Below are positions 24,509-26,130 of a stretch of 64,000 bases of DNA, one piece after another. This DNA comes from Orbicella franksi. Lineage: Eukaryota. Below the pieces are notes generated by a model. The model ran no database searches, was not told the DNA's origin, and saw only the letters and a list, made by a program, of their open reading frames with translations. The stretch spans positions 23,684,001 through 23,748,000 of the forward strand of contig OZ116703.1 of NCBI GenBank assembly GCA_964199315.1, in the 5' to 3' direction. A program made the translations under genes and the position numbers. Within the stretch, counting starts at the first letter, position 1, and the number at the start of each line of letters is the position of its first letter.

Positions 24509-26130
24509 TGTCACAGTGATATGTGTATCCCCGTGATATGTGTATCCCCGCACACATATCACTAGTGATATGTGTATTCCCCGTGGGGATACACAAAACA
24601 CTGATACGCGCCTGGACATTCAACGAACAAAATGGCGACTCGGTTGCGAGGTTCCGACGAGCGCTGTAAAGAGTAGAAGAAACCAGAAATGAATTCGCGC
24701 CCAACGGAGCAGATTAGGATTTCTTGAGTTTGGTTGAGTTCCAACCGACTCGATTGTATATCTGACTAAAACCTCGAACAGCGGATACGCATATCACTAA
24801 TTATTTCATGGCGCAGTGATCTCAGTGTGTATCCCCTAAACACAGCCGTTAGATTGGCTATCTACCTGATCGAAGAAAATGGCCAATTATTGCCGAAACG
24901 TGCTGGCTGCTTACTCGCTACGACGTTTATACCCAGGTTGAGGTTTGCGGAGTTTGCAACTCGAATGTTTAAATATCTAAACTGAAATCGCGTGCAGGGG
25001 ATATTCATATCACTAATTATTTCATGGCGCAGTGATATGTGTATCCCCAGGAACACAACTGTTATAATATAGCGCATCAACCTTGTCAAAACTGCAGGCA
25101 ATATTAGCACTCGACGTTTTTACACGGCTTGGGTTCACTGAAGTTTGAAACTCGATAATTCCACTAAAAACGCGTGCGCGCGTGCACAGGATAATAAGGG
25201 ATACACATATCACTGATTATTTCATGAACTAGTGATATGTGTATCCCCATGGACACAGCTGTTATATTGGCTTTCTACCCAAGAAGAAAAATGCCCATAA
25301 CATTTGCATTGTCAAAACTGGCTTGCTAGAAATATTTATTCATAGCTTGGGATTTCTGGAGTTTCACAGACCTCGGTTGTACACCGTCGCCGACCGCATG
25401 CAGGGGATACACATATCACTAATTATTACATGGCGCAGTGATATGTGTATCCCCTGAAGACAGCCGTAATCTAGGCTAACTGCCGAAGAATAAACGTCGA
25501 ATATTGTGAAACGTGCTAGCAATATTCGCAGTATAGCAATGTATACAGCTTGAGACTTAACATATCTTACAAAAAGTCGAACTGAAAAGCGGGTGCAGGG
25601 GATACACGAGTGCCACTAATCATTTTATGGCGATCGGGTCGAAGCCGTGATATGTGTTTCACTCCACGAATAATTCAGATGCAAACAAGGCGATGAACAG
25701 TGGAGAATATGCGTTACTCGAGGGGTGAGAATGCACCGCGCAATTAATATCGTCCTAGAAATCCGGTGCCGTGAAACTCAAATTGAAATATATCTAGATC
25801 CATTTGGTGTTCAACTTTAAATTCATTATATCCTGCTAGCAGAAAACCAGTTAGGATCAAGAACACAATTCCAGCAGTAAATACGTAAACTTTTTCAACT
25901 ACAAAAATTGAGATTTGTGTTTTACTGAAGCCTGTTTGGGTTAGTCGTTCGTCCAGTAAGCGACCGGACGACGAGAGCACTTTCAAGGAGGATATTGCTT
26001 TTTAAAGTAGAGGGGAGGGGGGTGGGGGATACACATATCACTGGTCGCCATTTTGGAGGGGATACACATATCACTAGTGATATGTGTGCGGGGATACACA
26101 TATCACGGGGATACACATATCACTGTGACA
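24509..26130. mobile_element. 1,622-bp non-autonomous element with TGTCA...TGACA termini and CCGG target duplication (Ginger1-like)
   Basis: CCGG(24505-24508)|TGTCACAGTGATATGTGTATCCCCGTGATATGTGTATCCC...GGGATACACATATCACGGGGATACACATATCACTGTGACA|CCGG(26131-26134), with a TIR of about 70 bp. TGTNR termini with a 4-bp CCGG TSD are, as I recall, the Ginger1 signature. No transposase ORF is present. Confidence 0.75.
24783..25660. repeat. Array of five ~52-bp hairpin units (GGGGATACACATATCAC-loop-GTGATATGTGTATCCCC) with ~150-bp diverged spacers
   Basis: Units start at 24783, 24997, 25198, 25403 and 25598 (periods 214, 201, 205, 195). The loop consensus is TAATTATTTCATGGCGCA. Confidence 0.85.

Follow-up and report, generated by a model that had tools for sequence, protein, structure and literature searches.

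The stretch of the Orbicella franksi genome analysed here (64,000 nt, referred to as the window, in which all positions given without a contig prefix are numbered) contains at 24509-26130 a 1,622-bp copy of a non-autonomous DNA transposon with the hallmarks of Ginger1. The element is a young, mobile, non-coding cut-and-paste transposon, and its core is formed by five tandem units of about 200 bp, each of which carries an inverted pair, or dyad, of a 17-mer, GGGGATACACATATCAC, that is also found in the terminal inverted repeats (TIRs). On balance, and with little more than even confidence, we favour the view that the dyads are auxiliary binding sites for the transposase, maintained by selection at the level of the element and not of the host. 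An earlier reading, made from the sequence alone, had proposed that the dyads are, or were, under selection, and this is borne out in part: between lineages their rate of change matches that of the TIRs and is several-fold below that of the spacers that separate them, but dyads and spacers decay equally in inserted copies. The array has demonstrably been resized by unequal recombination, which probably also built it.

The dyad array and its rates of change

The five inverted pairs follow one another at 216, 200, 206 and 195 bp, measured from start to start (Table 1), and a sixth left arm, a variant, lies at 24585 on the inner border of the left TIR, 196 bp before dyad 1. The 17-mer occurs 15 times in the window at two mismatches or fewer, every time inside 24516-26123, compared with 0 occurrences in dinucleotide-preserving shuffles of the window. 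The sequence-only reading had described five nearly invariant dyads. Five inverted pairs at a period of about 200 bp are indeed present, but only dyads 2-4 are near-intact: in the window copy dyad 4 has no mismatch, dyad 3 has one and dyad 2 has two (its left arm carries two private substitutions, at 25004-25005), and dyads 1 and 5 are degenerate. Because both are degenerate already in the family consensus, the differential conservation of the dyads predates the recent burst of copies. When folded as single-stranded DNA, dyads 2-4 form stems of 17-18 bp with 16-nt loops (-11.5 to -17.2 kcal/mol, z -5 to -7.7), dyad 1 gives a weakened hairpin and dyad 5 gives none.

The spacers were described as heavily diverged, which is correct in that they have 47-62% identical columns, as against a mutual identity of 87-98% among dyads 1-4. 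They are not unrelated, however, and spacers 1-4 align with one another above shuffled sequence with z of 3.3-12.8. In each unit the conserved block measures about 85 bp: besides the arms it takes in the 18-nt loop and extends some 10 nt beyond the arms in both directions. The array is a diverged tandem repeat and not a series of repeats with foreign spacers. Its likeness to CRISPR is visual only, and a CRISPR array was rejected, as the spacers are mutually homologous and the unit belongs to a dispersed eukaryotic transposon with target-site duplications (TSDs). The array sits on one side of the element (24585-25665) with no mirrored partner (an inverted-repeat scan returned only the terminal arms of about 86 nt), and Tandem Repeats Finder (TRF) detected no microsatellite in 24509-26130. 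In the window copy 13 bp are missing at 25333, which are present in the consensus and in contigs of three libraries.

Changes fixed between transposing lineages were kept apart from changes gained after insertion. The lineages are represented by the consensus sequences of subfamily A (30 copies, five units), subfamily B (4 copies of 1.35-1.41 kb, without unit 5) and subfamily C (5 older copies, five units). Among these consensuses, variable sites amount to 1/156 (0.6%) in the intact dyads and 2/201 (1.0%) in the TIRs, compared with 40/788 (5.1%) in the spacers, 4/124 (3.2%) in the degenerate dyads and 9/355 (2.5%) in the 3' unique region. The difference from the spacers is significant for the intact dyads and likewise for the TIRs (Fisher p=0.009 in both cases), and for the dyads it persists when A is compared with B at non-CpG sites only (1/152 vs 30/615, p=0.019). 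Six diverged A-type copies on coral metagenome contigs from other samples, when compared with the A consensus, differ at 17/802 sites (2.1%) in the intact dyads, 16/571 (2.8%) in the TIRs, 196/3655 (5.4%) in the spacers and 38/549 (6.9%) in the degenerate dyads; the same pattern is seen in five of the six, with a pooled p of 3e-5 for cells that are not independent.

Within family A, mismatch to the consensus is 0.73% in dyads vs 0.84% in spacers (p=0.53); with CpG sites excluded, the values are 0.75% and 0.77%. The sequence-only reading had suggested that palindromes and spacers be compared among copies and had named equal divergence as speaking against its own proposal, which is what the inserted copies display, in contrast to the slower change of dyads between lineages. 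The equal mismatch within the family therefore indicates that the dyads are no mutational cold spot and that inserted copies are under no host-level constraint. Variants that are specific to single units, namely those in the loop of dyad 3, the loop of dyad 4 and the first base of dyad 3, are identical in A, B and C, and thus conversion has not homogenised the dyads since the lineages split. Collectively, constraint between lineages, neutral decay after insertion and the lack of homogenisation point to purifying selection on the propagation of the element; its strength would be roughly equal for dyads 2-4 and the TIRs, and dyads 1 and 5 would have escaped it.

Two roles suggested from the sequence alone fare poorly in the light of these data. 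One is that of a host-level chromatin element, in which protein-binding dyads phased with nucleosomes at about 200 bp would serve as insulator, enhancer or positioning signal. The period of 195-219 bp would suit such a role, satellite and core repeats often have monomers of 140-200 bp (PMC3879986), and the repeat offset of about 194 bp around the dyad of a related family (family D, see below), found despite unrelated sequence, gives one hint of a preferred pitch; yet dyad and spacer positions are lost at an equal rate in inserted copies, indels of 1-21 bp alter the spacing between lineages, which argues against strict phasing, and the insertion is polymorphic at this locus, so that we give the idea scarcely any credence. 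The other is a cassette of RNA hairpins acting as a small-RNA source or structured transcript, an explanation that we find just as hard to believe in spite of the stability of dyads 2-4 as single strands and of metatranscriptomic contigs that cover the element family, possibly through DNA carry-over. Indeed, the stems reach 17-18 bp only, the best Rfam hit scores 26.2 bits vs a gathering score of 65, and no reads fall on the array (24509-25708) in about 1.5 Gb of raw reads from polyA RNA-seq. Moreover, the changes in the arms of the family D dyad and of dyad 3 in A are not compensatory, and recognition of the sequence is therefore favoured over that of a hairpin structure.

Table 1. Parts of the transposon copy and their positions in the window
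Feature	Position	Strand	Remark
Left TSD, CCGG	24505-24508		identical CCGG at 26131-26134
Left TIR region	24509-24604	+	94% complementary to right end
Dyad 1, degenerate	24781-24836		left arm 2 mismatches, right arm 4-nt insertion; spacer-like drift between lineages
Spacer 1	24837-24996		homologous to spacers 2-4, z 9.7-12.8
Dyad 2	24997-25048		17-nt arms, 18-nt loop
Spacer 2	25049-25196		from spacer alignment
Dyad 3	25197-25248		one mismatch; loop variant kept in subfamilies A, B, C
Spacer 3	25249-25402		13 bp of family consensus absent after 25333
Dyad 4, perfect	25403-25454		-17.2 kcal/mol as single-stranded DNA, z -7.3
Spacer 4	25455-25597		from spacer alignment
Dyad 5, decayed	25598-25665		no hairpin fold; absent from subfamily B
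Non-repeated 3' region	25666-26024		no notable open reading frame; from spacer alignment and open reading frame scan
Right TIR region	26025-26130	-	17-mers at 26025, 26058, 26090, 26107; terminus TGTGACA 26124-26130
Right TSD, CCGG	26131-26134		pair of 24505-24508; empty site has a single CCGG

Superfamily, copies and relatives of the element

Ginger1 elements are defined by a 4-bp TSD that is CCGG (75%) or CCGT/ACGG, by TGTNR termini and by TIRs of 40-270 bp, and their transposase is Gypsy-integrase-like, with YPYY, H2C2, DDE and GPY/F (PMC2836005). The element agrees with Ginger1 in TSD, termini and TIR length, and its designation as Ginger-like in the sequence-only reading is supported. In particular, the TGTCA...TGACA termini, which are present in the window copy and in nearly all others, fit TGTNR...YNACA. 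Identical 4-bp flanks surround 20 of the 24 copies in which both termini are intact, with CCGG in 10, CCGC/GCGG in 7, and CCCC, GCTC and CCGA in one copy each. Two related groups were considered and excluded: Ginger2/TDD because it prefers AT-rich RTATAY targets (PMC2836005) and the targets here are GC-rich, CCGG-like 4-mers, and GingerRoot because its TSDs are of 6 bp (6-8 bp; PMC6839031), as opposed to 4 bp. A scan of the element gave no open reading frame (ORF) of note.

The TIRs are about 75-95 bp long, with arms that are 94% complementary over 86 nt including flanks and a clean TIR of 73 nt. The ends of the family consist of TGTCACA followed by GTGATATGTGTATCCCC, and each TIR has two perfect tandem copies of the 17-mer at its end (TRF period 17, 100% matches), in agreement with the earlier statement that the same 17-mer forms tandem subrepeats at both ends. 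The left TIR is composed of TGTCACA (24509-24515), the two tandem 17-mers (24516-24549), a short-loop dyad (24552-24581) and a variant half-site (24585-24601). A AAAATGGCGAC-like motif is placed just inside it, at 24627-24640, with its reverse complement in the right TIR at 26044-26056, and has a counterpart at the corresponding place in family D (D139-152); it may represent a second conserved site.

The family has about 80-100 copies in the stony-coral genome to which the window belongs (497 Mb, 805 contigs), where at least 40 full-length matches of 95-98% identity are spread over many chromosomes. The 24-nt terminus occurs 192 times and a pattern search returned the unit-2 dyad signature 79 times. 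The 30 aligned copies diverge by about 0.8% from a 1,630-bp consensus. Contigs of two public libraries from other coral samples (X2 and X18) link 24504 to 26131, with a 4-nt ambiguous overlap, and omit 1,626 bp, that is the element and one TSD. Since this empty site occurs in other coral samples, the insertion at 24509-26130 is polymorphic or lineage-specific, and the family is recently active. For the purposes of genome annotation it is an ordinary, well-behaved transposable element (TE) family, to be masked.

Metagenome contigs hold elements with the same termini and TIRs and with unrelated interiors, which fall into families D and E. Family D is non-autonomous, measures about 800 bp (L100, at 1069-1873, together with L115, L075, L071 and L117, all coral metagenome contigs) and matches A only at positions 1-96, where the two are 95% identical, in the right TIR and in the arms of its one internal dyad, whose loop measures 12 nt. 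This dyad is flanked by a direct repeat of about 95 nt, 94% identical, at an offset of 194 nt. The interior of family D was not found in the genome searched, and the family therefore comes from another coral. Family E (L087, a Ga0126336 contig) measures 1,125 bp, has the same terminus and an insertion within the left TIR, and contains two internal inverted copies of the motif, 174 nt apart. Thus, internal inverted pairs of the motif recur in three families (A, D and E) whose interiors are otherwise non-alignable, which argues that the arrangement matters to this group of transposons or arises repeatedly.

Some further features of the copies and of their surroundings were noted. On contig C14 (G000:C14:15.9-17.4 Mb), seven same-strand copies, at 15913004, 16245253, 16499875, 16758972, 17069250, 17155271 and 17389315, are spaced at intervals of 86-330 kb, and identical OTU hits lie amid them at 16106830 and 16930813, in what looks like a large segmental or tandem duplication. 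L015 (C8:23.68 Mb) and L017 (C6:26.75 Mb) have 1.4 kb of common flank on each side and represent a segmental duplicate and not independent insertions, and L008 has long flank matches to L003 (885 nt) and L019 (1,352 nt). In the copy L033 (G000:C3:27969180-27972393), dyads 2 and 3 are separated by a 1.58-kb insertion, and element positions 683-687 (about 5 bp) are duplicated. To the left of the element, 24230-24430 contains a C/G homopolymer run and a repeated unit that includes ATGGGGTCRC (24314-24336, 24355-24377). PolyA RNA reads of related copies cover 24209-24430 and continue into unlike sequence, which identifies another repeat family that is transcribed somewhere.

Resizing, origin and possible role of the array

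The variation in unit number, which the sequence-only reading had proposed to examine, is readily observed: copies with 3, 4, 5 and 7 units exist, five being modal. One unit was lost in L035 via exchange within dyads 1 and 2, and L048 and L053 are each short of two units owing to exchange between dyad 2 and dyad 4, a pair with 98% identity. Both flanks of L048 show an unambiguous GCGG TSD; those of L053 are ambiguous, as its first two terminal bases are missing. L057, with seven units, is the reciprocal product of a dyad 2-dyad 4 exchange. In addition, L037 carries an internal duplication of 151 bp, and the number of terminal 17-mers ranges from 1 to 4 among copies.

Within an array of this kind, the three central dyads would be kept through selection on the propagation of the element itself. 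In particular, an integrase-type transposase acting as a dimer or multimer would find auxiliary binding sites in them, which would help a non-coding element to capture a limiting transposase or to assemble the synaptic complex; they would be helpful and not essential, and their decay after insertion would be neutral. This reading infers that the 17-mer is the transposase-binding site, that binding would be dimeric and that the dyads would raise the efficiency of transposition. A precedent exists in Galileo, where tandem repeats in the TIRs bind the THAP domain (PMC3688188). A more specific version, which we regard as rather doubtful, would have the dyads act as a cis-acting transpositional enhancer for a Ginger1 integrase-type transposase, kept across coral species and across families with unrelated interiors, with the pitch of about 195-215 bp mattering for an intasome-like complex. 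If true, it would be the first internal enhancer described in the Ginger/integrase lineage and would offer a natural setting in which to study the reading of multi-site DNA by integrase multimers.

Several results weigh against a role of the dyads as auxiliary sites. Decay has affected two of the five dyads, unit 5 is missing from subfamily B, and some derivatives have 3 or 7 units. Three loci are occupied by minis of 78 bp that consist of TIR ends alone, 24 nt of one end and 54 nt of the other (L038, G000:C2:4286552-4286629; L055, C5:18261819-18261896; L056, C7:15956332-15956409), each with its own TSD (CCGG, CCGC and CCGG, respectively). The ends therefore suffice and the dyads are dispensable for transposition; the 78-bp mini is probably the smallest mobilisable substrate of the transposase, and any effect of the dyads must be quantitative, not all-or-none. 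Furthermore, among copies with independent flanks, counted after removal of the segmental duplicate L017, variants found in at least two independent copies amount to 6/156 in the intact dyads (four in loops and two in arms, in a young family), 33/795 in the spacers and 3/200 in the TIRs. Dyads and spacers carry them at a like frequency, and alteration of the dyads has therefore not prevented transposition. When within-family is contrasted with between-lineage change, the result is borderline only (p=0.054), and the between-lineage statistics come from few lineages and small consensus samples (4 copies for B and 5 for C).

No transposase with these termini was found among the termini examined in the genome and in the metagenome contigs, which also weighs against the reading. 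The autonomous partner that the sequence-only reading expected did not appear: no ORF lies beside any terminus examined, a set to which a further 16 Ginger1-like loci, of 46-84% identity, do not belong. Paired and unpaired termini on C1-C9 belong only to family copies, to fragments, to a copy with the 1.58-kb insertion and to 78-bp minis, and termini followed by a non-family base led to one B copy and one fragment and to no partner. A search for three or more tandem 17-mers gave only ordinary copies with 3-4 terminal repeats, and no OTU-domain hit was near an unexplained terminus. An apparently intact autonomous element of the Ginger1 type, L052 (G000:C2:34187000-34193500, the element at about 969-5844), does exist, with a 906-aa ORF that contains Pfam rve and OTU, but it was rejected as the partner because the motif of its TIRs differs from the 17-mer; tblastn of its ORF against metagenome contigs bearing the terminus gave no match. 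The TIRs of L052 measure 347 bp and each carry about 10 direct TGTCRCACTTTGTAATA subrepeats, each of which starts with a terminus-like heptamer, and this shows that multi-site TIRs are normal among the Ginger1 elements of this genome.

A different explanation, which we consider unlikely, is that the dyads are a passive by-product, for instance relics of head-to-tail junctions of a mini-element of about 200 bp or duplicated pieces of TIR. They would look conserved because they are recent, by chance, or through conversion of short tracts by the roughly 20 motif copies of each element. One junction of this sort was found, in a head-to-tail pair of B copies (G000:C14:10202424-10205201), where a right-end and a left-end 17-mer make up a dyad like the internal ones, its arms 17 nt and its loop 16 nt long (10203802; L051 60-110); at this junction the first right terminus is cut to TGT and is followed by 6 filler bases and then by TGTCACA. 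The 18-nt loop could likewise be read as 7+4+7 (terminus, TSD and terminus), and the TGGCGCA before each right arm matches TGTCACA at 5/7 positions (shuffle p=0.016) and the TGTCGCA of the L052 family at 6/7, but the whole loop agrees with a model junction at 6/18 positions (p=0.25). Tandem TEs are known to arise when a preferred target is hit twice (PMC5932611), and a CCGG TSD restores the target that is preferred. A clean terminus-TSD-terminus junction was not found, however, by a pattern search of the genome, and a search of the same kind for a free-standing MITE (miniature TE with inverted repeats) resembling a unit of about 200 bp gave internal unit-2 sites only. Descent of the dyads from fossil junctions of a multimerised mini-element is accordingly a possibility to which we attach little weight, and it would be compatible with a later function.

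The dispensability of the dyads in the 78-bp minis and the propagation of mutated ones would also be expected of a by-product. Nevertheless, the persistence of unit-specific variants across subfamilies indicates that there is no ongoing conversion, and arms of 17 nt are too short for efficient conversion. Moreover, relics would drift like dyads 1 and 5 (3-7%), whereas dyads 2-4 change at TIR-like rates in three data sets.

A transposase sponge or regulator could draw on the same evidence from the sequence for binding sites. In it, the dyads would bind transposase and yet lower transposition by titration or non-productive synapsis, and internal ends that point the wrong way could be rivals of the true ones. 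We consider this very unlikely, since selection at the level of the element would purge sites that lower its own spread, the five-unit form is the most successful (about 55 copies, vs about 10 of the four-unit B form, two known with 3 units and three 78-bp minis), and decay after insertion indicates that no host-level selection retains the sites.

Comparison with known systems

Retroviral and Gypsy integrases have cut-and-paste relatives in the Ginger1 elements, and hardly anything is known about DNA recognition by Ginger1 transposases beyond the terminal TGT...ACA. The coral family supplies a candidate binding motif of 17/19 bp in three arrangements, namely in tandem, as a dyad with a 2-nt loop and as dyads with 12-/18-nt loops. 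With its natural derivatives, in which internal dyads number 0, 1, 2-3 or 5-7, and its recent activity, the family makes an auxiliary-site role directly testable, and it is also an example of how element-level selection on a repeat can be separated from host-level selection.

The use of several motif copies, or of an internal cluster of sites, is familiar from systems whose transposases are unrelated to that of Ginger1. In En/Spm (CACTA), subterminal TnpA motifs are both direct and inverted, with inverted pairs bound cooperatively, but they lie within about 300 bp and have no period of about 200 bp. In phage Mu the internal enhancer is a single cluster of sites that aids assembly of the transpososome.

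Among elements of its own superfamily, the coral element shares with the Ginger1 elements first described the TGTNR termini, the GC-rich and mostly CCGG 4-bp TSD, a TIR length within 40-270 bp and a cnidarian host (PMC2836005); it differs in being non-autonomous. The founding description contains no tandem, subterminal or non-autonomous features, and the internal dyad array is thus outside the described anatomy (PMC2836005).

The sequence-only reading knew of no description of such an architecture, which was too strong, as non-autonomous TIR elements with tandem repeats that include conserved segments, either TIR-derived or palindromic, are known in the Foldback-type elements Galileo and Tetris and in DTC84 (PMC3688188, PMC4079207, PMC3879986). 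In Galileo, the repeats in the long TIRs hold additional THAP-domain sites, as established by footprinting and electrophoretic mobility shift assay (PMC3688188). In Tetris, the TIR-220 repeats have 37 bp in common with the terminal domain, and its authors proposed that extra sites raise the efficiency of transposition and that unequal crossing-over alters the number of units (PMC4079207). Like the coral element, both have internal repeats of about 200 bp with end-derived sequence and a unit number that varies by unequal exchange (PMC3688188, PMC4079207), the coral units each carrying two inverted TIR 17-mers as candidate binding sites. In contrast, the repeats of Galileo and Tetris are inside long TIRs and mirrored in both arms, and the elements belong to the P or probably Mutator superfamilies, whereas the coral element has a single asymmetric array outside the TIRs, a dyad in each unit, spacers diverged to about 50-60% and a presumed integrase-type transposase.

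Tandem-repeat MITEs of bivalves and insects (DTC84, pearl, DINE-1 and PERI) are similarly non-autonomous, with arrays reshaped by deletions (PMC3879986). In particular, DTC84 has up to five core repeats of about 160 bp, each of which ends in a conserved palindrome within a low-variability segment (PMC3879986). Elements of this type are defined by an AA TSD, short inverted repeats, a microsatellite that borders the array on one side and a palindrome unrelated to the ends (PMC3879986), none of which is present in the coral element, with its CCGG TSD and no microsatellite detected by TRF. All in all, the element is a variant of a known design and not a new kind of system; what sets it apart from these precedents is its Ginger1 superfamily, the one-sided array outside the TIRs, the dyad form of the sites and the strongly diverged spacers, together with evidence of lineage-level constraint alongside neutral decay after insertion.

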